Shown in pieces: positions 12,516 through 46,751 of a DNA stretch of 64,000 nt (positions are counted from its first letter, which is position 1; the number at the start of each line of letters is the position of its first letter). The position numbers and the translations under genes were made by a program. The notes beneath the pieces are model-generated. The model was not told where the DNA came from. It made no database searches and was given only the letters and a program-made list of their open reading frames with translations. Location: positions 124,001-188,000 of the IMG/VR virus record IMGVR_UViG_3300044701_003953; one strand, given 5' to 3'.

Positions 12516-13406
12516 TCAAGTGCCCCAAGCGTTACGCCAGATATCAACTTGTAGACGTGGACTGTAACGCCATCCACGTTCCATGGCCAATTTAGCGACT
12601 TCTTGTGTGTTAAGATTGTAAACTTGCGGAACACCGCCCATTGGCATGAGATACACTGGCCCACCGAATCCCGCCTCACGGAACTCAGCTACGGCACGTT
12701 CTGCGTCCTCTACGTCTTTGCGAGTAGCCACTACGAACTTGACATAAGTGTAACCGATCATCTCATAGCTCTTGATGACCTTGGGATTGATCGCCTTATC
12801 CCAGCTTTCGCCCGAGCATGGTAGTTTTGGACTCACAGAGAATGTGAGCTTGTCGTAGTCTCTACCGTTGCGTGTAAATTCTTGGAACAGGTATTCTTCC
12901 ACTTCAGGATACAAGGCTTGGCTACCATTGGTCTCAAACGTGAGATTGCGGAGTCCGTTGTCTCGACAGCGTTGGATCATGTCGGGATATAGTCGCTGAT
13001 AGCCCAGCAAAGGTTCACCACCAGTTATAACCAAATGTACATCATCATTGGCCCACTCGCCCGACCACTTTCCATTGGGAATCAATGCTTCCATTTTGTC
13101 CACGATCACATCCGGATCGTCTTGCTCATTGAACGACTTAAACTCGGGATAGATGCTCGCGTATGTGTCGCACCCCGTGGTCACTAGTGGTAGATCTTCG
13201 AACTTTTTATACTTGTCGGGATCTGCCTTGACCATGTTGATGATATCCACGACTTCTGGGTTGTGCCCTTCGAAGTCATCTGTACGGCCGAACTTCTTAC
13301 AACGGAAGTTACAACCATATGTTCGGAAGAACACGCTAGGCACACCTGCCCACTTGCCTTCGCCTTGTAGACTATAAAATATTTCTGTGTATGTGATTTT
13401 TTCCAT
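12516..13406 (-). CDS. queE: 7-carboxy-7-deazaguanine synthase (radical SAM)
   Basis: [10 protein letters not shown]...[16 protein letters not shown]...[34 protein letters not shown]; start at Met 13406. Confidence 0.93.
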
Positions 13407-13747
13407 CAATGATTCCTTTTGCCTTGGAACACGCAATTAAACAGCATGTGACTATCTCCATCGTTGATCACACGATGGAACGCACCGTCGGGGATCAATA
13501 CTACATCGCCAGGTCCCACACTAAATGGTTCGCTGGTCTCCTCTCCTACTATCATCTGCCCACGGCCTTGTACGAAAAAGTAAACTTCTTCTTGTCCGAC
13601 ATGCCTATGACCACGAGTCTGTTGATTACGATACAGCCATGTAGAACTCAGCACGAGATTATCGAGGTCGTGGTTATCCCGGAGCACATAAACTTCGTTG
13701 TCCTTGACTACTTCGCCACCGATATCATGTATGTGATATTTCTTCAT
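13406..13747 (-). CDS. Cupin-domain protein
   Basis: [16 protein letters not shown] and [14 protein letters not shown] cupin motifs. Confidence 0.85.
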
Positions 13748-14147
13748 TTAAATATCTCTTCAGTTCTTTGTCAGTGGGCTCAACGGCATAGTTATGTTTG
13801 AAAAAGATCTCATAACTGTCCGAGCCGTATTTGCCGATACCATATAACATTTTAGCATCACTGCCGTCCCAAGTCAAGTAGTCTTCGGTCATACCAAACA
13901 ACCTTTTAGTACGCACATTGACCATCCCCAATGGCCGGATCACTTCTTTGACCATCTCGGGGTCTGCCAATGAAAAGAATGCCGGGACAGGCCAGCGTTC
14001 TAGGAACTCTGGCAGCACCCGTTTCACGGGCTTGCGACCAGTTTGGTTCAGCATGATCACTGCCACCATGTGTTGCCAACGACGGACCCATTCTTCGCGG
14101 CCCGGCAGTTGTTGCTGGACCATCAGATCATCGCGCAATGGCTCCAT
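13725..14147 (-). CDS. MBD4-like HhH-GPD DNA glycosylase
   Basis: VAVIMLNQT, LYGIGKYGSDSYEIF...PTDKELKRY resembles the MBD4 catalytic domain; TAATG overlap at 14145-14149. Confidence 0.8.
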   Translation of the reverse strand: MEPLRDDLMVQQQLPGREEWVRRWQHMVAVIMLNQTGRKPVKRVLPEFLERWPVPAFFSLADPEMVKEVIRPLGMVNVRTKRLFGMTEDYLTWDGSDAKMLYGIGKYGSDSYEIFFKHNYAVEPTDKELKRYLNEEISHT

Positions 14148-14515
14148 TATCGTGTCAGGAACGGTTTGAGTTGTGGGGGAGTCCAACCTTCTGGTTTGAG
14201 AACTTTACCATCTTCGCGTTTACGGACTTTACCGGTGGCTGAGTCGATCTTAGCGAAGTTGGTGCGCATGACTTCGTTCCATGCTCCCTCTGCGTCCATC
14301 CCTGCGGAATGTATGGCACCGATAGTGACGACCAGGATATCGATCAGCGCATCGAGTTGTTCGACCGGGTCAGCGTCCACTAGAGCATGGATGAGTTCTT
14401 GATGCTCTTCGTTGATCAATTTGAGATACATGTTATATTGATCGAGATCGAACTTGCCGACTGTTTGGTCGCAGGCTCGCATGAACCGCTCTTGGTCTTG
14501 GAAAGGATTTGTCAT
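14147..14515 (-). CDS. MazG-like / PRA-PH-like NTP pyrophosphohydrolase
   Basis: LINEEHQEL, EQLDALIDILVV, EVMRTNFAK, KREDGKVLKPEGW. Confidence 0.85.
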   Translation of the reverse strand: MTNPFQDQERFMRACDQTVGKFDLDQYNMYLKLINEEHQELIHALVDADPVEQLDALIDILVVTIGAIHSAGMDAEGAWNEVMRTNFAKIDSATGKVRKREDGKVLKPEGWTPPQLKPFLTR

Positions 14516-14518
14516 TTT

Positions 14519-15043
14519 TTATCCTTCGTAGATGGCTGAGTTGGCTTCGTGCTCAAATACTTCCACAGAGCGTAACTTTACACCTTGTCCCACTGGATAA
14601 CGGGCAGAAAATGTTTTTCCATTGGGCAAGGTATATTCGCGACCTTGTTGATAGGTCTCAAGGATGTCTTGCATGGTGTTGTAGGCCAGTTCGGCGAATT
14701 TTTCGCAGCCCACTGCTTCCACGATGCGTAGGTCGCAAATGCCACCTTGCTCCTGGAGCCCCAACTTGGCCATGTTTTTAAAGATCTCAAGATGGGGATC
14801 ATCTGAGGCCACTACCAAAGTGTGATCGAACATGTATTCGCTCCACTCTTTGAATGCTTTCAGTCCACCGAAGTCCATAACCCAATTGCGATCATCAAGG
14901 GTAGTAGACTCAAATGCAAGACGAATGCCAATGCTATAACCATGCAATAGGCTGCAATGACTGTGAGTGCTACGCCATTGACGGAAACAGCACGAAAGGC
15001 CGCGGTCATTACCATAAGTTTTTGTTGAAAGGAATTTTGCCAT
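14519..15043 (-). CDS. queD: 6-carboxytetrahydropterin synthase
   Basis: HSHCSLLHGYS, WVMDFGGLK, FDHT, GCEKFAE, VEVFEH. Confidence 0.92.
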   Translation of the reverse strand: MAKFLSTKTYGNDRGLSCCFRQWRSTHSHCSLLHGYSIGIRLAFESTTLDDRNWVMDFGGLKAFKEWSEYMFDHTLVVASDDPHLEIFKNMAKLGLQEQGGICDLRIVEAVGCEKFAELAYNTMQDILETYQQGREYTLPNGKTFSARYPVGQGVKLRSVEVFEHEANSAIYEG

Positions 15044-15067
15044 CTCTAGTCTCCTGTGTAAGGGGCA

Positions 15068-15124
15068 AGTTTGATGACACGCAGAATTTATAAAGCGGGA
15101 TGAGCGTCATTGAAAGGCCGCTGG
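15068..15124 (-). ncRNA. Candidate cis-regulatory pseudoknot (preQ1-I-like riboswitch variant) in queD 5' UTR
   Basis: AGCGG/CCGCU stem, AUGACGC/GUGUCAU pseudoknot, CAUC-CC junction and A-rich 3' linker; lies between ATAAATA (15134-15140) and the AGGAG SD. Confidence 0.45.
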
Positions 15125-15148
15125 TTGAACAACTATTTATCGCAGTAG

Positions 15149-15967
15149 TCAATTGAAGAGAAAACGTCGATACCAAGGCGACTGTCCTTCTTGACGATCT
15201 ACTTCTATGTCCATGAGTTGATTATACACTATCTTCCTAGTGATATCAAGTCTTTCTTGTTTACTTTTGGCACCTAAAACTACCACAACGAAGTTTTGTC
15301 CGTTCTTTTCCACCATGAGTGCCACACACCACCCCGCGGCAAACGTGAAACCGGTCTTAGAGATCATGATTTCGTCAAACTCAAACAGCAGTGGACGATT
15401 GGTGTTCTGTAACTCTATGGTCCGGACCTTTTGTCGGAGTTTGATATCAAACAACGCCTGTTTCTGTACAGATGTTTCCACGATGAATGGGTAGCGAGCC
15501 GCGGCCTTCACCATTTCGGCTACTTCCGCAGCCGCGGCCATGTTGCCGGCATTCAGTCCCGATGGATCAACGAACTTAGCGGTAGGCATATTCAATTTCC
15601 GGGCGTGTTGATTCATGTCACGGACGAAGGCCTTTTGGCCCCCGGGATAATCGGCGGCTAGCGCATCAGCGGCTCGATTGTCGCTACGGATCAGCATGGC
15701 TCTCATGACATCTCGCCGTGTATGTGATCCTGCGGGTAATTTGCTTCCTCGGCGCACTGTGATGCGACGATCTAAGTCTTGGTCATGATCTAGTGCTACC
15801 ATAGCGGTCATGAGCTTAGTGATGCTGGCTATGCTCTTAGGAACATTAGAATCACTGTCTATCACTATTTCGTTTTTAGTGATATCATGTAACCAAATGG
15901 AAGGCGTCGATTCTTTGGCTAGTGCTGGAATACAAACCAGCGCCAAAGACAGTATCAATGATTTCAC
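15149..15967 (-). CDS. Peptidase S11 D-alanyl-D-alanine carboxy/endopeptidase (PbpG-like)
   Basis: Signal peptide; SITK (SxxK), SDN (SxN) and KTG motifs. Confidence 0.9.
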   Translation of the reverse strand: MKSLILSLALVCIPALAKESTPSIWLHDITKNEIVIDSDSNVPKSIASITKLMTAMVALDHDQDLDRRITVRRGSKLPAGSHTRRDVMRAMLIRSDNRAADALAADYPGGQKAFVRDMNQHARKLNMPTAKFVDPSGLNAGNMAAAAEVAEMVKAAARYPFIVETSVQKQALFDIKLRQKVRTIELQNTNRPLLFEFDEIMISKTGFTFAAGWCVALMVEKNGQNFVVVVLGAKSKQERLDITRKIVYNQLMDIEVDRQEGQSPWYRRFLFN

Positions 15968-16356
15968 GGTTGTTGGTAATCTTTTTTACGATAGTTGGCT
16001 TGCCCGGGTATGACCCCGCGCACACCGCCTACCGGGTCTTCTATATCGCCTTTGCGTCTCGGGATAAGATGTATGTGTGGATACATGACGGTCTGGCCAG
16101 CAGCCTCGCCCATGTTCATCCCAATGTTGAAAGCGTCGCACTCTCCGAGTTCTACCATCTGTTGACCTGATGCCCATGCCTCGTATAGCGTAGTGCTCAT
16201 CGATACTGGGTCCGTGCTCTTTGGGATAAAGAGTAAGTGACCTTTTGTGACTGGGTAAAGATCGCGGAACACGATATAAGTCATGCCTTCGCGGACCCAA
16301 TTGTCCCAGGGTGCTCTTCCTTCTGTTTTAGCGATGTAGTAATTGTCGTAGAACAT
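15964..16356 (-). CDS. HIT-family nucleotide hydrolase
   Basis: DLYPVTKGHLLFIPK, AGQTVMYPHIHLIPR. Confidence 0.9.
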   Translation of the reverse strand: MFYDNYYIAKTEGRAPWDNWVREGMTYIVFRDLYPVTKGHLLFIPKSTDPVSMSTTLYEAWASGQQMVELGECDAFNIGMNMGEAAGQTVMYPHIHLIPRRKGDIEDPVGGVRGVIPGQANYRKKDYQQP

Positions 16357-16363
16357 GATGTTA

Positions 16364-17002
16364 TTATATATTTACGGGTGAACGTTTGTCGAATAATTGC
16401 TTGACCACATCAATGGGCTGATAGAAATGTATACTAAACCAAACTCGAGGGCCTTGATTGTGTACTCTATGATACTGGGTGATGTTGATTATCGTGGGAG
16501 ACATGCTCCTCCCTGAGTAAAAGAAATCGTTTTGGTTATCGGGATCGTATACTACTCCTACAGAGTCACATATATGTAAAGGATAGACTAGACTGGCCTG
16601 ACCATTCTTGATGCTGTCGCGGTGCCTTGGTACATCATGACTAGAAAAACATACAGTGGCAGGCGTGAATGTGAGTTCAGGAAATGCCCGTTTAAATCGG
16701 TCTTCAAGGTCTTCGGTCTCATCGATGCCGCCCATGACGAAGAAGTCTTTGCTGGGACCACTCTTAGAGATCCAACCTCCCCCGGGTATCTCAGCGACTA
16801 CACTAGCGCCATCTTCGTAGAGGATATATTCTCGGTATATGTCAGTCTTGATAAAGTTATTGGCTATATCAGTGACGGTAGTCTTTAGTGCATCCCAGTC
16901 ATGATCGATATAGAGAGCAGGATGGAATCCCAGTAGCATCAGACATGCTCCTCGTTGGGATTCCAACGTCTCCACCATTCTTCCCAAGGAAACACGATCC
17001 AC
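16364..17002 (-). CDS. Possible 2OG-Fe(II) oxygenase-fold protein
   Basis: PRHRD (HxD) followed by YHRV and a distal Arg (RVWFSI). Confidence 0.45.
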   Translation of the reverse strand: MDRVSLGRMVETLESQRGACLMLLGFHPALYIDHDWDALKTTVTDIANNFIKTDIYREYILYEDGASVVAEIPGGGWISKSGPSKDFFVMGGIDETEDLEDRFKRAFPELTFTPATVCFSSHDVPRHRDSIKNGQASLVYPLHICDSVGVVYDPDNQNDFFYSGRSMSPTIINITQYHRVHNQGPRVWFSIHFYQPIDVVKQLFDKRSPVNI

Positions 17003-17514
17003 TGCGGGTCTTCGAATTTGTTGATAGTCTCGGCTGAGTAAGTTGGATGTAGTGTACTTTCACTGCTTTCGTTATCGTAAAGCACAGCCACACGCACATT
17101 ATCTCCCCAGATGCTATTCCAAACGGGATCATTGGGCATACAGCCGCCGGGCCAATCTTGCTTGATCCAGTTTAGTGTAGCACCCGAGTCATTGATATCA
17201 TCGACGATAAGGATTTTCTTTCGAAGTTCGGGGTTGCTATAGCCTGGCATGTCATCAGTGCGATGATACCCAAATGCTTCTTCGGCCATCCAAAGATTGC
17301 TTTCGCAATCACCGTCCTCGCCGCCATCACGCAATTTGACCTTAAGAGTTTCCATTGGGCAATCAAGATATTGGCTGATGAGGTTAGCAGGAACCAACCC
17401 ACCGCGAGTGATGCCTACCACATAGTCGGGCACCCAACGATCCTGCCACATCTGTCTTATCAGTTCTTGGACTTGGCGCTGGACATCTCCCCAGCTCACG
17501 TATACTTTTTTCAT
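16939..17514 (-). CDS. Type I phosphoribosyltransferase (purine-salvage, Gpt-like)
   Basis: VVGITRGGLVPA, ILIVDDINDSGATL, WIVFPWE. Confidence 0.9.
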   Translation of the reverse strand: MKKVYVSWGDVQRQVQELIRQMWQDRWVPDYVVGITRGGLVPANLISQYLDCPMETLKVKLRDGGEDGDCESNLWMAEEAFGYHRTDDMPGYSNPELRKKILIVDDINDSGATLNWIKQDWPGGCMPNDPVWNSIWGDNVRVAVLYDNESSESTLHPTYSAETINKFEDPQWIVFPWEEWWRRWNPNEEHV

Positions 17515-17915
17515 CGTTTCAATGTTTCCCAGATTTGTCGTTTTTCCAACATGCGCTTTTCAACAGCGCGATATTCGTCGCCTATCCGGCGGAGTTCTTC
17601 GAATTCTGCTTCTAGTTCGGGATTGAGCTTGACCAATCCCAGTTTACGCTCGATGGCATCCAAGATAGACATGAGGCTCTTGTCCCCGATCTCAATGTCG
17701 GCATTTTCACCCTTGAGCGAGATCTTAGCCGAATTGGGTCCCACCATCCCGGAATCGTTGAAAGTCCATGGACCATTGGTGTTGTTGGTGACAGTCACTT
17801 TCCCAAGATAAGGGGTAGCCGGTAAAGACACCGATGTGGTCATGGTGCTGTAAGTGAGATCGGTAGCCGCGTCAGTGTTCCACACCGGTGGCACGTTCTT
17901 TGAGGTATTGGTCAT
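17511..17915 (-). CDS. Hypothetical phage protein
   Basis: 134-aa ORF, operon context. Confidence 0.65.
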   Translation of the reverse strand: MTNTSKNVPPVWNTDAATDLTYSTMTTSVSLPATPYLGKVTVTNNTNGPWTFNDSGMVGPNSAKISLKGENADIEIGDKSLMSILDAIERKLGLVKLNPELEAEFEELRRIGDEYRAVEKRMLEKRQIWETLKR

Positions 17916-18339
17916 GCTTGATCCATTTATTGTTTACTAGGAATCCCCATTCTCTCTTGTGCGGTCCGGGCATAAACAACGTCCAGGCCGTCACACCTTC
18001 TTTTAGTTCGATGCGATGGTAAGAGTCGGGAGAGCAGATACGGAAATGACCGGGGCCGCGCCAGTGTCGGGTTTCCCCAATCTGTAGGCCTTGGGAATCG
18101 AAATCAGGAGTCCATTCATAGTATCCGCCACGTAAGATCAGAGTAGCATAAGGCCATGGATGGTCATGCACGTCATCGGGATCTGACTTAAGAAATTTGT
18201 GGACGAATACATTAAAAGGGAACCACTTTCGGTCGCGAAGAAAAACATAATATCTCTCCAAGTAAGGTTCGGTATCCACGCGATCCATGATCACGCGGTA
18301 GCGTCCCAACCTTTGCATGATGCTTTTAAGCAACGGCAC
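17872..18339 (-). CDS. Cupin-like phage protein
   Basis: HKFLKSDPDDVHDHPW, GGYYE, HRIEL; start uncertain (GTG 18339 or ATG 18318). Confidence 0.6.
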   Translation of the reverse strand: MPLLKSIMQRLGRYRVIMDRVDTEPYLERYYVFLRDRKWFPFNVFVHKFLKSDPDDVHDHPWPYATLILRGGYYEWTPDFDSQGLQIGETRHWRGPGHFRICSPDSYHRIELKEGVTAWTLFMPGPHKREWGFLVNNKWIKHDQYLKERATGVEH

Positions 18340-18538
18340 TTTTAAGGTTTTCCCCGAGTTCACGGATCTGTTCTGCGTTAAGGAAGAAATCATAGCTACT
18401 CTCATCGATCTTTTTACCATCGTTGTCGTATTGTTCGCCTGTGAATCTTAAGTGCTTGAGATCCGCTGGCATCACGCAATCATTGATCGTGACACGGATT
18501 TTAAAGGCTTGCCCGTCATTTGCTAAGAACTGTTTCAT
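18326..18538 (-). CDS. Hypothetical protein
   Basis: Start MKQFL at 18538 by ATGA overlap with the small upstream gene. Confidence 0.65.
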   Translation of the reverse strand: MKQFLANDGQAFKIRVTINDCVMPADLKHLRFTGEQYDNDGKKIDESSYDFFLNAEQIRELGENLKSAVA

Positions 18539-18681
18539 TTCTCTGAACCTTTCACCGAGTCGAATACATGTGGTAACCAGCCGGTTAATCCAACCAACCA
18601 GCCATATACGGCAGGAGTGCCCCAACTAACATACATCATGAAAATACAAGAAATTGTGATAAACATAGCGGCTATCTTCAT
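18535..18681 (-). CDS. Small membrane protein, 48 aa (absent from ORF track)
   Basis: MKIAAMFITISCIFMMYVSWGTPAVYGWLVGLTGWLPHVFDSVKGSEK; ATGA overlaps at both ends. Confidence 0.75.
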   Translation of the reverse strand: MKIAAMFITISCIFMMYVSWGTPAVYGWLVGLTGWLPHVFDSVKGSEK

Positions 18682-18878
18682 TCTGGTCTCCCCGAAGTAC
18701 ATGAATCATTCCATAAATCTTGTGCTTGCTGACGATATTGATCTAGTTCCCATTTGTTCTTTTTGATCAGATAGTCGTCTTCGGTAAGCCCATGCCAACC
18801 GATACATTTTCCTGTTGGACTGCGGCCACATCCACATGGCACACCACCGTCCTTGAATTGATCTACTCTTACTTGCAT
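18678..18878 (-). CDS. CDGSH-like iron-sulfur mini-protein
   Basis: PCGCGRSPTGKCIGWH resembles the CxCxx(S/T)xxxPxCDGxH ligand set. Confidence 0.55.
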   Translation of the reverse strand: MQVRVDQFKDGGVPCGCGRSPTGKCIGWHGLTEDDYLIKKNKWELDQYRQQAQDLWNDSCTSGRPE

Positions 18879-18889
18879 GATCGTTTCCT

Positions 18890-19636
18890 TTATCTAGGTG
18901 CGTAGTCTTGCTGGAGTTTGATGTTGTCGATGAACTCTTTTTTCACGGCGGAGTCCAACTTAAATGCTCCATGTAGAACAGTAGTCTGGGTCAACGAACT
19001 ATGTGCCATGATGCCACGATTCTCGCAACAGCCGTGTGTGGCTTGGATATATACACCAACATCTTTGCTGTCAGTGGCCTTCATGATCTCACGAGCGATA
19101 TCATTACAGAGTTCTTCTTGTAAGGTTCCTCGGCGAGCACACCACTGTGCGATGCGAGTGTATTTGCTGAGGCCGATCAGTTTCTGTGCGGCAAGGATGC
19201 CAATATAAGCAACCCCAACAACGGGTTGATGATGATGGCTACACATACTACGAAGTTCACTACGAACCACGAGCATGCCCTCGTAACGGTCTTCCGAATC
19301 GTTTGGAAACGCTGTGCAATCTGGTGCTGGGTCATATCGACCTCCCATTATTTCGTTGAAGTACATCTTGGCCAATCGACGTGCTGTGCCCTTTGAATTG
19401 GGGTCGGTTTCCCTATCGATGAGCAAACGGTCTAGCACTAGTTCAAACGCTTCGGTGGCTTCGTCGATCAGTCGCGCTTTATCTTCTTCGCTTACATAGT
19501 CGCTGACATTATCGCCTGCCCAGAAACGCTTGTTATCACGTTTCATCTTGAAGCGGATAGCATCGCCTAAGTATGCTTCTTTGTAACCACTGTCGCCTGC
19601 CATCGCATCAAGTGCTGTTTGTTGTTTATCTGTCAA
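18890..19636 (-). CDS. folE: GTP cyclohydrolase I
   Basis: TARRLAKMY, SMCSHHHQP, GLSKYTR, LQEEL, HGCCENRG. Confidence 0.95.
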   Translation of the reverse strand: MTDKQQTALDAMAGDSGYKEAYLGDAIRFKMKRDNKRFWAGDNVSDYVSEEDKARLIDEATEAFELVLDRLLIDRETDPNSKGTARRLAKMYFNEIMGGRYDPAPDCTAFPNDSEDRYEGMLVVRSELRSMCSHHHQPVVGVAYIGILAAQKLIGLSKYTRIAQWCARRGTLQEELCNDIAREIMKATDSKDVGVYIQATHGCCENRGIMAHSSLTQTTVLHGAFKLDSAVKKEFIDNIKLQQDYAPR

Positions 19637-19669: not shown

Positions 19670-20248
19670 TTAGATTATTCTTATTTTCCTGAGGTCAGGA
19701 TACATTTTAGCACGAGGCTCTTCATTATGCGAGCCCAACATTACCAAACCTTTTTCTGCTTCTTCGGGTGTGGGTCTGTAATGATATCCCACTTCGAATA
19801 CTTGCTGTTCCTGCCATGGTGATATATTTAGGTCGCGGCCGTCATATCGTTGGCGGATCACTTTATTATAGAACTGTTCGTCGTCTGTGAGGATAGCACC
19901 ACCACGGCCGATCTCGAGTGGTTTGTCGAAACCAAAGCTCAGGCATTGTAACATACCCGGACGATACATATCACGTCTGAGCAAGCGAGCCGAATCCCAT
20001 ACACGTGAAGAACGGAAGCGATACTCTCCTACCCATTCTTCGTCAATGAGCTGATACTCTATTCCTAATCTTTTAAAAATCATAGGGACAGACAGATAAG
20101 TGAATGCTGTGAACTCTACTTTGCTGGGCTGGTCGTAGCGGAAACAAAGTTCGAGAGCGTGTGTACAACAGTCAGTCATGATAACATAAGGCGCCCCGGT
20201 GTAGTGCGCCAATGCTTGTTCGAAATCTGCTATGCTCTTAAACGACAT
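19670..20248 (-). CDS. Compact DegT/DnrJ/EryC1/StrS-like PLP aminotransferase
   Basis: DCCTHALEL, WDSA, LSFGFDKPLEIGRGGAILTDD (PLP Lys), YDGR, GYHY. Confidence 0.75.
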   Translation of the reverse strand: MSFKSIADFEQALAHYTGAPYVIMTDCCTHALELCFRYDQPSKVEFTAFTYLSVPMIFKRLGIEYQLIDEEWVGEYRFRSSRVWDSARLLRRDMYRPGMLQCLSFGFDKPLEIGRGGAILTDDEQFYNKVIRQRYDGRDLNISPWQEQQVFEVGYHYRPTPEEAEKGLVMLGSHNEEPRAKMYPDLRKIRII

Positions 20249-21209
20249 CTCGGCGATACCATTCCCATGCGTGTTCGATCATTTCATATAGATCGTATTT
20301 AGGCCGCCAACTGCTGGCACTCATCAACTTGTCAGCACTGGCCGTCAGCAAAGCAGGATCGCCGGCACGCCGATCTCCATACTTTTCAGGCCAGCGTGTG
20401 CCAGTGACTTGTTCAGCAGTCCTGACCACTTCTAAGTTGCTGGCACCACGATTGGTGCCGATGTTGTAGACACCATCGAGATCTTCTTCGATAGCCACAC
20501 GGATGGCCGACGCGATATCTGCTACATGGATGTAGTCACGGACGCAAGTGCCGTCGGGCGTGTCAAAGTCAGTGCCATTGATCACGAATTCTTTTTCGTG
20601 TAGCACGGCTTCTAGGTATCTCGCGATGATGTGCGTGGCTTCTTTTTCTTGACCATGCCTGCTTCCAGGATCGGCACCACATACATTGAAGAAACGGAAT
20701 GCGGTATACTTGAGCCCATACGCCATCTTGTAGTCGGCGAGTATCTGTTCAAACATTAGCTTGCTCCAACCATAGGGAGAGATGGGCACAGTGGGTCCAT
20801 CTTCCTTTAGCGGGACGATGCTGGGGTCGGGATTACCATATGTGGCCGCTGAACTAGCGAAAACGATCCTGGTCTCTGGACTGTGTTTACGGACCATATC
20901 CAAGAAACGGATGGAACGTGCCACGTTGTTTTCGTAATATTCGCCGGGGTCGGTCATGGAAGGACCTACTAGGCTAGTTCCAGCACAATGCACGATAGCA
21001 CGTGGTCTATGTTCTTTAATAGCATGTTCAACAGCCGCACTATCAAACCCATCCACGATGGTCTGGTGCCAGTTATTGGACACCGGGCGGCTGCGTCGAT
21101 CTACACCGATGACCCAGTATTTTTTCTGGTCCGCTAGTTCCAACCCAACCTGGCCACCGATGTATCCACCGGCGCCAGTGACTAGGATAGTATCAATACT
21201 TTGATTCAC
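20238..21209 (-). CDS. galE: UDP-glucose 4-epimerase-like NAD-dependent epimerase
   Basis: TGAGGYIG, SSAATYG, YGWSK (YxxxK), FRFFNVCGA, GTCVRDYIHV. Confidence 0.9.
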   Translation of the reverse strand: MNQSIDTILVTGAGGYIGGQVGLELADQKKYWVIGVDRRSRPVSNNWHQTIVDGFDSAAVEHAIKEHRPRAIVHCAGTSLVGPSMTDPGEYYENNVARSIRFLDMVRKHSPETRIVFASSAATYGNPDPSIVPLKEDGPTVPISPYGWSKLMFEQILADYKMAYGLKYTAFRFFNVCGADPGSRHGQEKEATHIIARYLEAVLHEKEFVINGTDFDTPDGTCVRDYIHVADIASAIRVAIEEDLDGVYNIGTNRGASNLEVVRTAEQVTGTRWPEKYGDRRAGDPALLTASADKLMSASSWRPKYDLYEMIEHAWEWYRRDVV

Positions 21210-22371
21210 TAGTATGCTTTCTGTAGTCTACGGTGTTGCGTAACCACTGCTCGCCTTGTCCTTCCAAGATGTCACAGATGCGATCGATGGTGCCATCGTT
21301 ATAGTCTGAAATCTTGCCCATGTCTGGATGGGGTGCTTCTAACAATGGCTTCAGTTTGTTGATAGCATCATCTAGGCTCCATGGAACGTAAAGTCGGCTA
21401 GCATCATTTGAAAAAGTTTCAGGAAAGCTACGATATGCAGGGTAAAGAACATTACACCCCAGAGTGTCGGCTTCGGATACAGTGTTAGATACCCAGTCTT
21501 GAAGAGCACAATTAAAGAGAACACGACTATCATTAAGAAGGGCATAGTAATCATTTTTTTCCAAGTCCTCGTGTAATGACAGCAATCCGCGGGCCTGTAG
21601 GTCTCGTGTCCGCTTCATGTATGAATCGTTGTTGCTACGCAATTTAGCGCCCGAGAAGATGGCAAACTCCACACCCGAATCGGGATAACGGCGATGCCAT
21701 TCTTCGATGAGATCCATGTAAAAGTCAGGTTGCTTTTCTTGGTCCCAGCGAGCGGCAAAGCCAACCCGTAAGGCACGGTCCTGGAAAGGTTTCAATTCAC
21801 CTGGCACACGGCCACGCACTTCGTCCTTGCCAAAAGCAAGTCCGGAGATGTTGTAGATTGGGGCTTCCCAGCCAGCGATTTTCATGTGTGCCACCATCTC
21901 TTCGTTGGTAGCCAGGACCGTGTCTACGAATGAGTCCACCATCTTTTCATAAGTTGACATCCACTTCTGCATGCCCCAGACATGAACGAAATCATCGGGG
22001 TCAATAGTTTGTGCAAGACAACGAACGGCGATACGAGGGCGAAGAGCAGGATCGATTTGATCCATAATGTAAGGCAAGCTCTCGATACCGGGCTGGAACA
22101 TATCTTCAAAATAGATGACATCTTCTCCATTGACTTCTCCTGCTTTCATCTTTTTAACGAGATTCATGAGTTGGCTCATACCAAAGTAGGTTCTGCCATG
22201 AGCATCCAGGACCTGGCCAGTGACGATGGCCTTGTCGTTACTGAGTGTTTCACCTTCGACGATTTCGTAATCGATACCTCGACGCTCAAACACCGCACGA
22301 TTCCACTCTTGTAACTGTAGAGTGTAACGTGCCTTGTAGGGCTCTAGGCCCATGTACCATAACTTACGCAT
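21193..22371 (-). CDS. GT-B (GT4-like) glycosyltransferase
   Basis: VGFAARWDQEKQP, ALQDWVSNTVSEA, YPAYRSFPE; probable start MRKLW at 22371. Confidence 0.75.
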   Translation of the reverse strand: MRKLWYMGLEPYKARYTLQLQEWNRAVFERRGIDYEIVEGETLSNDKAIVTGQVLDAHGRTYFGMSQLMNLVKKMKAGEVNGEDVIYFEDMFQPGIESLPYIMDQIDPALRPRIAVRCLAQTIDPDDFVHVWGMQKWMSTYEKMVDSFVDTVLATNEEMVAHMKIAGWEAPIYNISGLAFGKDEVRGRVPGELKPFQDRALRVGFAARWDQEKQPDFYMDLIEEWHRRYPDSGVEFAIFSGAKLRSNNDSYMKRTRDLQARGLLSLHEDLEKNDYYALLNDSRVLFNCALQDWVSNTVSEADTLGCNVLYPAYRSFPETFSNDASRLYVPWSLDDAINKLKPLLEAPHPDMGKISDYNDGTIDRICDILEGQGEQWLRNTVDYRKHTSESKY

Positions 22372-22939
22372 TGTTTTTCCTGTAATTTCCAATGGTTAAT
22401 TGCCTTACCACAAAAGGTTGATCCAACACCGAATGCACGATGTATTTGGCCATCTTGTCGGAGTCGATCTTTGAAAGTCTAATACGATCATCAGTTGTCC
22501 TGGGAGTATCAACCAGTCCAGGCTTCACTAAGACCACATCACATCTTGCTTCGAGATCGTTCCACGCCCATTGTGATGCCATTTCTAGAGCAGCTTTTTC
22601 GGAAGCATAATGAGCCCGCCCTAAAGGGTGTTGTGGACTGTCGGGGCCCGATCTCATGTCGTTAACTATGCTGCCAATATTAACGATCTTCTTCGGCTGG
22701 TCTCTCCAACTACGCCAGAGCCTAGTAAAAATCTCAACCTGGAAAAAACGTTCATGGGCATTGTTAACGAACATGTCAGCATCGGCTGACATTTCCACGA
22801 TTCTTTTTTGGGTTTCAACATCTGATATATTAAACCCAGCACTCCGAGAGATACCGACCACGTCGTGACCGCGCTTACAAAATTCTTCAGATAAAGATTT
22901 TCCAATCCCCGAAGTATTTCCGGTCACGATGATTTTCAT
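22364..22939 (-). CDS. Short-chain dehydrogenase/reductase
   Basis: IVTGNTSGIG, FVNNA, IVNIGS, YASEK (YxxxK), VKPGLVDT. Confidence 0.88.
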   Translation of the reverse strand: MKIIVTGNTSGIGKSLSEEFCKRGHDVVGISRSAGFNISDVETQKRIVEMSADADMFVNNAHERFFQVEIFTRLWRSWRDQPKKIVNIGSIVNDMRSGPDSPQHPLGRAHYASEKAALEMASQWAWNDLEARCDVVLVKPGLVDTPRTTDDRIRLSKIDSDKMAKYIVHSVLDQPFVVRQLTIGNYRKNNA

Positions 22940-43792: not shown

Positions 43793-44539
43793 TTATTCTA
43801 CCGTCACGATCTCGTGGACATTTGTGATTATGCCCGGGCTGATCAACTCAACGAATGTGTTTATCGAAATATCGTTGGTGTAATAATATACTCCCCAAAA
43901 TGAAGAGTAAGACGAAGACAGCATTTTCCTTGGTGCCGCGGGCAGGCTGACAAGGTCCTCCATCGAAAGCAGGTAATTCAATAAGCTAGATTTCGATGCG
44001 GTATCTAATCTACCATCTCGTAACAATACTTTATAACGGTATTGGTTCCTTCGTGATTTCCTGAGTATCTTGTTTTCTTGTAACATCGGGATATGTTCAG
44101 GGCGTGGCACGCTGATAGAAAACACTCGCGACTGATCGACAGCAGTAAAATGCTCGATCACTTTTTTCAATGAGGTTTCATCCTCTGCGTAGACTTGTAT
44201 GTACGGTTCTTCGACCCTTAACTTGATAGTGTCATCTTTGAGCAGATCCTTGAACACTTCAAGCTGTGCGAGACTAGATTGGTCGAGCGATTTATTGTTA
44301 CGATATATCCAGCTACCGCCATGGTTCCTATGTACCACTCGTGTGTTTATAGATGATGATATATCCTCGTCGTGGATGGCCCTGCCGCCGGGGCAAAACA
44401 CCCTCATGCGGCACAGATATTTTTTAAAAAATATTTTCCGTGTCTCTTCGAAGACGACGACGGAGTTAAGATTGATCCAGTACAATATATCCATTGTTGT
44501 CCACGGCTGGTTGTAGTTTATAGTCGCCTTTAACATCAA
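43793..44539 (-). CDS. Hypothetical phage protein
   Basis: Long ORF following clpA; true start probably downstream of 44539. Confidence 0.65.
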   Translation of the reverse strand: MMLKATINYNQPWTTMDILYWINLNSVVVFEETRKIFFKKYLCRMRVFCPGGRAIHDEDISSSINTRVVHRNHGGSWIYRNNKSLDQSSLAQLEVFKDLLKDDTIKLRVEEPYIQVYAEDETSLKKVIEHFTAVDQSRVFSISVPRPEHIPMLQENKILRKSRRNQYRYKVLLRDGRLDTASKSSLLNYLLSMEDLVSLPAAPRKMLSSSYSSFWGVYYYTNDISINTFVELISPGIITNVHEIVTVE

Positions 44540-46751
44540 AGACTACTTCATGATCGACGACACTAACTACTACTGTTGATCCCGGCGATAGCTTTTCAAA
44601 CAAGATCTTCTTGCTAAGTGGGACCTTCACCATTTCGTTGATTTTGCGAGCTAACGGACGAGCACCCAACTTGGGATCATACCCAACCTCTGCGAAATAA
44701 TTAACCGCGGTCTCTGTGAAATGCACACGCAGATTCTTATCACTGAGCAGTTCATTCATTTCCGACATGAGCTTGATCACGATCTTCTTCATGCTGAGAT
44801 GATCCAATTTGCCGAATTTACAGATGCCGTCGAGTCGATTGCGGAACTCTGGCTTGAAAAAGTCTTTGACTGCTTTATCATCTTCGCCGACTTTCTGGAA
44901 ATTCCTACCTATACCGATGGCATTCTTTTCTGAGTCTGCGGCACCCAGGTTGGAAGTCAATATCACGATAGTGTTGCGGCAATCGGCTTTCTTACCATTG
45001 CTGGAAGTGATCATACCCTCATCCATGAGGTTCAGTAAGACATTAGTGACATCGGGGTGTGCTTTTTCGATCTCATCAAACAGGATAACAGAGTTAGGAT
45101 TCTTCTCTACATCGCTGATCAAGAGTCCGCCACCGAGATTACTATCGTCGTAGCCTACATAGCCCGGGGGAGCACCAATCAGCTTAGATGCCGAATGCTT
45201 CTCTTGATATTCGCTCATGTCATAGCGTAATAATTTCATGCCCAAGTTATCAGCCAGGGCTTTCGCTAGTTCTGTCTTACCTGTGCCAGTGGGGCCGATA
45301 AACAGGAAATTGCCAATTGGTTTGTTGATAGCCTTGAGTCCGGCTTTGCTGACATAGATCTTTTCCAATACTTGGTCAACCACCGAATCTTGTCCAAATA
45401 CACGATCTTTAATACGATTTTCAAAATCATCGACGTCCTTGATCTCGTCGCTATCTCCGATCTGATCTGCAGGAATCTTGGTAAACTTGCTGATGGCTTC
45501 TACGATCTGGCTCTTGCCCACGATCCAATCATTGAGATGTATCTTGGATTTGGCGCAGGCTGTGTCAATAAGATCGATAGCCTTGTCTGGTAGTTTCTTG
45601 TCAGTCTGGTATCTCACGCTGAGATCTACAGCGGCATCGATAGCTTCGTCGGTAATCTTACCTCCGTGAAATTCTTCAAAGTAATTACGCAATCCTCGTA
45701 ATATGTCTTTGGCCACAACCGGACTTGGCTCCTCGATCGCCAACCTATGGAATCTGCGCATAAGAGCTCGATCTTTCTCGAAACTCTGTGTGAATTCTTC
45801 CCAGGTAGTAGATGCGATTACTTTGATGTGACCTTTGCTTAGGGCCGGCTTAATCATGTTAGCAAAGTCTACGCTGGAGTTAGATCCCGAACCGGCACCT
45901 CTCATCTGATGCGCTTCGTCAATGAATAGTATGCACTTACCGATAGCATGTAAAGCCGCGATTACTTCTTTGAGTTTTTCTTCGAATTCGCCACGATATT
46001 TGCTGCCGGCTAGTAGTCCGCCGATGTCGAGATTGTAAACAGTGAAGTCTTTGAGATAATCAGGCACTTCACCGTTGATGATGTTTAATGCTAACCCTTC
46101 GGCTATCGCGGTTTTGCCTACACCAGGATCGCCCACCATCAAGACATTGCTCTTGTTGCGCTTGGCTAGGATTTGTGTAATTTCGGCTATCTCGACTTCG
46201 CGACCAATCACGGGATCGATCTTGCCTTTTTCTGCCATCTCATTGAGATTGTCACAGAACTCCTTTAGTATTTCTGCTGCCTTGGCCTTGTTTGATGCCC
46301 CGGCTTCTTTTCGTTTGTCTTGCCAATTTTCGTTGTAATAGTCGACTAATCCGCTGCGGTCGATGCCGTACTTCATCAGAAAATAAGTAGCATGGCTGTT
46401 GCCTTCTTGCCATATGCTCAACACCAAATCGATGACTTGTATATGAGTGCGTCCCGAGAATAACACCTGAGTGAATGCTCGATTAAACACACGCTCGAGC
46501 GCATGTGTTTTTTTAGGAACATCGTCTTTGTCTGCCGAAGCTAGATGCTCTTGTGTTGTCAAGTACATCAACAACTCGTTGGACATGCCCTCGACGTTTA
46601 CACCATAATTGTTTAGAAATTCATTAAAAGGTTTATAGGTCAAAAGACCCTGTAATAGATGCTCTACAGTCACGTATTTGTGTCGTAGTTGGCGTGCTGC
46701 TGTAGTGGCATATTCTACGATCATTTCTATTTCAGGATTGGGTTGTATCAT
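44466..46751 (-). CDS. clpA: ClpA-like Clp ATPase (Hsp100)
   Basis: Clp-N domain, GDPGVGKT, FIDEAH, GPTGTGKT, LFDEIEKAHPDV, FKPEFRNRLD, GARPL. Confidence 0.93.
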   Translation of the reverse strand: MIQPNPEIEMIVEYATTAARQLRHKYVTVEHLLQGLLTYKPFNEFLNNYGVNVEGMSNELLMYLTTQEHLASADKDDVPKKTHALERVFNRAFTQVLFSGRTHIQVIDLVLSIWQEGNSHATYFLMKYGIDRSGLVDYYNENWQDKRKEAGASNKAKAAEILKEFCDNLNEMAEKGKIDPVIGREVEIAEITQILAKRNKSNVLMVGDPGVGKTAIAEGLALNIINGEVPDYLKDFTVYNLDIGGLLAGSKYRGEFEEKLKEVIAALHAIGKCILFIDEAHQMRGAGSGSNSSVDFANMIKPALSKGHIKVIASTTWEEFTQSFEKDRALMRRFHRLAIEEPSPVVAKDILRGLRNYFEEFHGGKITDEAIDAAVDLSVRYQTDKKLPDKAIDLIDTACAKSKIHLNDWIVGKSQIVEAISKFTKIPADQIGDSDEIKDVDDFENRIKDRVFGQDSVVDQVLEKIYVSKAGLKAINKPIGNFLFIGPTGTGKTELAKALADNLGMKLLRYDMSEYQEKHSASKLIGAPPGYVGYDDSNLGGGLLISDVEKNPNSVILFDEIEKAHPDVTNVLLNLMDEGMITSSNGKKADCRNTIVILTSNLGAADSEKNAIGIGRNFQKVGEDDKAVKDFFKPEFRNRLDGICKFGKLDHLSMKKIVIKLMSEMNELLSDKNLRVHFTETAVNYFAEVGYDPKLGARPLARKINEMVKVPLSKKILFEKLSPGSTVVVSVVDHEVVFDVKGDYKLQPAVDNNGYIVLDQS

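Follow-up and report, generated by a model that had tools for sequence, protein, structure and literature searches.

Riboswitches of the preQ1-I class (Rfam RF00522, types I-III) are minimal H-type pseudoknots linked to 7-deazaguanine metabolism, in which the loop of a short P1 hairpin pairs with the 3' tail to form P2 (PMC11625349). The closing G-C pair of the 5-bp P1 forms the floor of the pocket and a conserved cytosine lies immediately 5' of the P1 3' strand. The 2-3 nt L1 is led by a conserved U (U6) that reads the ligand, L2 has about 5 nt, and an A-rich L3 runs up to P2, where an adenine also reads the ligand, preQ1 or preQ0. The P2 3' strand overlaps the Shine-Dalgarno (SD) sequence or promotes a terminator, so that the ligand turns expression OFF, although one preQ1-I riboswitch is reported to repress translation even when separated from its SD (PMC10018353). 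The preQ1-II and preQ1-III riboswitches are pseudoknotted OFF switches tied to the same pathway, in which a cytosine reads the ligand, but they adopt HLout-type folds with extra helices and a ten-nucleotide shared pocket (PMC11625349). Translational ON riboswitches that work by strand competition include the Vibrio vulnificus add adenine riboswitch, where one strand of an aptamer helix is also complementary to the ribosome-binding region, so that ligand binding holds this strand in the aptamer and frees the SD or AUG; its aptamer is a three-way junction with a known ligand. In phages, the T4 gene 32 leader contains an H-type pseudoknot at the 5' end of the mRNA that controls translation as a nucleation site for a protein, and it lacks a densely conserved junction core or a strand that mimics the start region. 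Only a few riboswitches have been reported in phages, and we found none described that controls a DNA-modification pathway.

We analyzed a 64,000-nt stretch of viral DNA (the window; positions 124,001 to 188,000 of IMG/VR record IMGVR_UViG_3300044701_003953) that comes from a freshwater metagenome and belongs to a jumbo phage distantly related to Sinorhizobium phage Phosso and Agrobacterium phage Atu_ph07 (DNA polymerase 49-51% identical). A megablast search found no match to cultured phages. The original prediction placed a preQ1-I-like riboswitch variant, with a 5-bp P1, a 7-bp P2 containing one G-U pair, a CAUC-CC junction and an A-rich tail, between an ATAAATA motif and the SD of queD. The minus strand reads exactly as described, in a 105-nt gap between an upstream Peptidase_S11 gene (15149-15967) and the downstream queD gene. 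The features of the locus, all on the minus strand, are as follows.

15134..15140 (-), ATAAATA promoter-like element, 11 nt before P1
15074..15122 (-), whole candidate aptamer, an H-type pseudoknot of 49 nt
15118..15122 (-), P1 5' strand, AGCGG, pairing with 15094-15098
15111..15117 (-), L1, CCUUUCA: N-C-U followed by a spacer of variable length
15104..15110 (-), P2 5' strand, AUGACGC (conserved core 15104-15108), which imitates the start-codon region
15099..15103 (-), L2, UCAUC, with C15099 as the putative specificity base
15094..15098 (-), P1 3' strand, CCGCU
15081..15093 (-), L3, UUAUAAAUUCUGC, 13 nt
15074..15080 (-), P2 3' strand, GUGUCAU (core 15076-15080); 7 bp with one G-U
15073..15079 (-), anti-start segment, UGUCAUC, sharing 6 nt with the P2 3' strand
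15051..15055 (-), SD, AGGAG, 7 nt before the AUG
15038..15044 (-), start-codon region, GAUGGCA, partner of the anti-start segment
14519..15043 (-), queD (start codon at 15043), encoding a PTPS-family, 6-carboxytetrahydropterin synthase-like protein of 174 aa (Pfam PTPS E 6e-13, PHROG QueD-like E 5e-35); the putatively regulated gene and first of a same-strand run, followed by MazG-like, HhH-GPD-like, cupin and QueE genes at 12516-14515

On its own, the window leader folded no better than shuffled sequences (minimum free energy z-score of -0.16), a result that tells nothing either way. In order to evaluate whether the element is more than a chance inverted repeat, we therefore turned to relatives. 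A protein-only search with QueD in IMG/VR found at least 597 relatives. Of the window and the best 80 loci, 73 of 81 carried one copy of the motif, always on the sense strand ahead of queD or of a PTPS paralog just before it. A DNA pattern taken from the conserved core found at least 120 more viral stretches, about 115 of 120 being complete motifs, and a second, unbiased protein search with a diverged QueD clade gave the motif in 78 of 80 loci. In total, the element precedes QueD/PTPS genes in about 190 of the IMG/VR viral contigs that we retrieved, and more exist. No second copy was found in the window, and none in the loci whose queD lacks the leader.

Covariation among phage queD leaders, which had been proposed beforehand as a test, was found in both helices. 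In an alignment of 68 diverse copies, P1 and P2 paired in 91.2% of cells, compared with 38-54% when the partners were slid, and 149 cells were changed on both sides, compared with 47±9 in shuffles (0 of 500 shuffles reached the observed value). P1 pair 3 was C-G in 35 sequences, A-U in 17, and U-A in 16, and pair 1 was A-U in 57 and U-A in 6, whereas the three G-C pairs never varied. All five core pairs of P2 covaried, with three to six standard pair types each. Only these inner 5 bp are conserved, the two outer A-U pairs of the window's P2 being specific to its lineage. RNAalifold recovered P1 on its own. A covariance model built from the alignment hit the window once, at 15071-15125 (62.7 bits, E 9e-22), the next best hit scoring 9 bits. 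The L3 DNA (TTATAAAT) looks like a -10 box, but we rejected this as the main explanation because the covariation is at the RNA level. Indeed, compensatory changes in both helices and strict strand- and gene-specific recurrence in hundreds of contigs cannot arise from a DNA site or by chance, and we consider that reading refuted. Thus, the original observation is confirmed.

In 136 unique copies, the consensus is [A]G[N]GG for the P1 5' strand, N-C-U plus 0-6 variable nt for L1, about 5 nt for the P2 5' strand, U-C-A-H-C for L2, CC[N']C[U] for the P1 3' strand, N-U-A-H-A-N-A-Y-U-C-U-G-C for L3 (always 13 nt), and about 5 nt for the P2 3' strand. The first base of L1 was A in 48, U in 45, and C in 43 copies, while the C-U at positions 2 and 3 was essentially invariant although no search pattern imposed it. 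In samples picked by protein only, the U, C, A, and final C of L2 never varied and H was never G, and A3, A5, A7, and UCUGC of L3 were likewise invariant. In all, about 20 unpaired positions never vary. Some P2 helices carry a bulged A or a mismatch next to the junction. From the sequence alone, one may imagine that C-A of L2 and U-G of L3 extend P2 by two invariant pairs across a U-C mismatch. A scan of the whole viral collection for a base other than C at the putative specificity position gave 84 hits, of which only one is a true lineage, with U (UCACU|CCACU; locus L441, positions 1960-2040, identical in loci L459 and L480). The rest of the motif and the anti-start helix are intact in this lineage, which lies upstream of a divergent 194-aa PTPS paralog and may represent a natural change of specificity.

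We then compared the element with described families. Rfam 15 returned nothing at gathering score on the whole window, and at E≤10 on 301 nt of the window and on 201 nt of a second, different leader it returned only noise such as mgtC leader, a miRNA, and BaMV CRE, without any preQ1 class. The element nevertheless shares with preQ1-I the H-type topology, a 5-bp P1 whose top two pairs are G-C in all 68 aligned copies, a 5-nt L2, and a cytosine just before the P1 3' strand that is invariant in the 136 unique copies. L3 starts A-rich, with three invariant adenines that could line the P1 minor groove by analogy with preQ1-I, and six invariant or near-invariant bases, YUCUGC, then separate this part from P2. 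In contrast to preQ1-I, the first L1 base is not the conserved U, L1 carries a variable spacer, P2 is longer (5-7 Watson-Crick pairs, sometimes with a bulge), and the P2 3' strand does not contain the SD, which lies about 20 nt downstream. The element would thus work like a preQ1-I aptamer, but membership in the class is not shown. The preQ1-II and preQ1-III classes are excluded both by Rfam and by the fold, since the element has only two helices.

Examination of the gene context showed that a QueD-family match follows the motif in 189 of 189 instances, a median of about 80 nt downstream. The first downstream ORF belongs to the PTPS/QueD family in about 186 of 189 cases, the exceptions being a cupin and two unknown proteins of about 240 aa. 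These ORFs span at least five strongly diverged clades (seen, for example, at loci L005, L081, L094, L098, and L130), most with CxxxHGY instead of CxxxHGH, plus one canonical CxxxHGH QueD. In L005 (2426-3530), the leader precedes two PTPS paralogs in tandem, one of which may be a DpdL-like enzyme. In loci with enough flank, FolE is upstream in every locus where it was found (41-42 loci), a HIT gene is upstream (42 of 42), and QueE is downstream (28 of 32). The motif follows the gene and not the phage lineage, since it occurs in jumbo phages and in shorter contigs (up to about 65 kb) of the second QueD clade. A blastn search with the leader gave only chance matches of 22-30 nt, and no isolate with the motif was found. 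A pattern scan of 185,579 cellular genomes gave at least 120 hits, of which 119 of 120 were chance matches lacking P1 or the L1 C-U. The single true motif (L251, contig CAIJZG010000002.1, 5.5 kb, labeled as a Bacteroidetes MAG) has a phage-type leader and PTPS gene and is probably a mis-binned phage fragment.

The tie to almost a single gene family is compatible with a protein-binding translational operator, in the manner of the T4 gene 32 leader, with a phage or host protein, for example QueD itself, binding the pseudoknot or its alternative fold through the invariant loop bases. This possibility cannot be excluded, but we consider it unlikely. The same invariant bases are kept in front of at least five strongly diverged PTPS clades and in unrelated phage types, which is hard to reconcile with a coevolving protein partner, and no conserved candidate regulator gene accompanies the motif, as the neighboring genes vary between loci. 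Furthermore, its size, the density of invariant junction bases, and the preQ1-I-like layout of the pocket are typical of small-molecule aptamers.

Promoter-like elements lie just upstream of the motif. In 134 homologous leaders, 44 have a sigma70-like promoter, with the -10 ending 6-9 nt before P1 in 27 of them, and 60 have an [AT]TAA[AG]TA element within 35 nt upstream of P1, commonly ending 5-11 nt before it. The candidate aptamer therefore probably starts the transcript, promoter function being inferred. The T4 late promoter TATAAATA occurs twice in the window, no more than expected by chance. The shorter ATAAATA is not more frequent than chance either, yet all 12 copies (including 6839(+), 9476(-), 29908(-), 38139(-), 42244(-), 52698(-), and 57408(+)) lie on the coding strand of the adjacent gene, mostly shortly upstream of a start codon, so that it is likely a phage promoter element resembling the T4 late promoter. 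In lake metatranscriptomes, contigs of relatives run from queD into the leader, including L3 and the P2 3' strand, but this evidence is weak, as such contigs show presence and not transcript ends and DNA carry-over is possible.

To evaluate how the element might act, we folded the part from the end of L3 to 15 nt past the start codon, leaving out the 5' half of the aptamer. In 110 of 135 unique leaders, 4-5 of the first five bases of the P2 3' strand paired with the SD or start region. The AUG was fully paired in 89 of 135 leaders, and the SD was at least half paired in 109 of 135. In the window, UGUCAUC (15079-15073) pairs with GAUGGCA (15044-15038), and the SD lies inside the loop and inner stem of the resulting hairpin. 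The arrangement was found in 81% of the leaders, compared with 30% when this strand was shuffled, and the median duplex energy was -9.0 kcal/mol for this helix and -5.3 for P2. The pairing persists through at least six platform designs: UGCCAU or UGUCAU opposite AUGGCA; AAGUCAUC opposite GAUGACUU, where the P2 5' strand is GACUU; UUGCUAUC opposite GAUGGCAA; GCCAUUG opposite CAAUGGC; UGUCUUC opposite the SD GGAGACA; and a CCUAUG...CAUAGG hairpin over the SD. At each position, the base on the P2 5' strand usually equals that of the ribosome-site partner, for example, C:G:C in 69, G:C:G in 24, and G:U:G in 11 at one position. This three-way covariation shows that the P2 5' strand mimics the start region and that the two pairings exclude each other.

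We propose that the element is a cis-acting riboswitch at the 5' end of the phage queD mRNA, a reading to which we assign a probability of roughly 0.65. In this view, a small-molecule pocket forms between the G-C top of P1 and P2, and the invariant C probably pairs with a guanine-like face of the ligand, as in preQ1-I. Without ligand, the more stable hairpin would win and hide the ribosome site, and queD would not be translated. With ligand, the pseudoknot would be locked, the ribosome site freed, and QueD made, probably with the products of the downstream genes, including QueE. The structure, its covariation, conservation, and position, and the competing pairing are shown by our comparisons, whereas ligand binding, the nature of the ligand, and the ON direction are inferred. 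The ON direction rests on the assumption that the effector stabilizes P2, as in all known H-type riboswitches, and in view of PMC10018353 a steric OFF effect cannot be excluded. In mechanism, the element would be closest to strand-competition ON switches such as add. An effector-free RNA switch, such as a folding timer, a thermosensor, or a device that opens the ribosome site only in transcripts from the nearby promoter, would also be consistent with the two competing helices and the upstream promoter-like elements. However, it does not explain about 20 invariant unpaired nucleotides, an L3 fixed at 13 nt, or a base before the P1 3' strand that is C in all but one lineage, none of which a simple competitor helix would need, and we regard it as improbable.

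The invariant C suggests a compound with a guanine-like face, i.e., a 7-deazaguanine, guanine or deoxyguanosine, or a pterin. The original prediction had noted that no queC was visible and proposed CDG, 7-deazaguanine, preQ0, or guanine as ligands. A tblastn search with phage Iggy proteins found no QueC or DpdA homolog in the window, where Pfam was run on only about 20 neighboring ORFs, and QueC appeared in only one of the roughly 200 viral motif-bearing loci searched, so preQ0 and preQ1 may not be made. Phages with FolE, QueD, and QueE but no QueC are proposed to make 7-deazaguanine or CDG (PMC10516641). A true preQ1-I OFF switch, sensing preQ1 or preQ0 as end-product feedback on the phage pathway, would fit the shared topology, pocket features, and gene context. 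However, it conflicts with the absence of Rfam hits, the first base of L1, the YUCUGC end of L3, the scarcity of QueC, and an anti-start strand that predicts ON, and we consider it unlikely. Conversely, an ON switch in front of a biosynthetic gene is unusual if the ligand is a pathway product, and end-product ligands fit the ON logic poorly. Together with FolE lying outside the switch, the ON logic would fit feed-forward control by a precursor better, but this is conjecture. Altogether, the original interpretation is partly supported: the conserved H-type pseudoknot at the 5' end of the queD message and the riboswitch reading stand, the latter as the best one, whereas membership in preQ1-I does not find support.

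Our literature searches found no description of this element; the 2023 paper on phage 7-deazaguanines does not mention a riboswitch, and a 2026 preprint on noncoding space does not mention queD or preQ1. The motif is thus an apparently undescribed and strong riboswitch candidate, almost confined to viruses. It is possible, although we hold this only tentatively, that it represents a new phage-specific class that reuses a preQ1-I-like pocket to sense something other than preQ1, for example, a pterin precursor such as dihydroneopterin triphosphate or CPH4, CDG or 7-deazaguanine, or a guanine-type signal, and that switches ON the genes that build a 7-deazaguanine DNA modification. The C-to-U variant may then point to a second ligand specificity. 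If the element binds a ligand, it would show that phages regulate their anti-restriction DNA chemistry with their own metabolite sensor, it would add either a new ligand or a new ON-type architecture to the smallest known riboswitch fold, and it would give a ready-made 49-nt ON switch for engineering. Hundreds of natural variants, one of them changed at the putative specificity base, make the ligand question directly testable.

The minus-strand gene set at 12516-19636 of the window comprises FolE, PRTase, HIT, QueD, a MazG-like pyrophosphatase, a small HhH-GPD-like protein, cupin, and QueE. HIT and PRTase recur beside the leader in many loci, which, with the absence of a tblastn match to QueC or DpdA, hints at a noncanonical route to a 7-deazaguanine, perhaps at the nucleotide level. 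A cysteine-dioxygenase-like protein (PHROG 4786) is encoded near these genes (17872-18420, minus strand). A DegT/DnrJ-type aminotransferase ORF (19670-20248, minus strand) has only 192 aa, its best match covering profile positions 24-92 of 360; it lies beside epimerase/dehydratase and glycosyltransferase-like genes (20238-22939) and may be truncated or split. Finally, a ClpA-like ATPase (44466-46751, minus strand) is 42-43% identical to those of the jumbo phages Phosso, Atu_ph07, and PA5oct.
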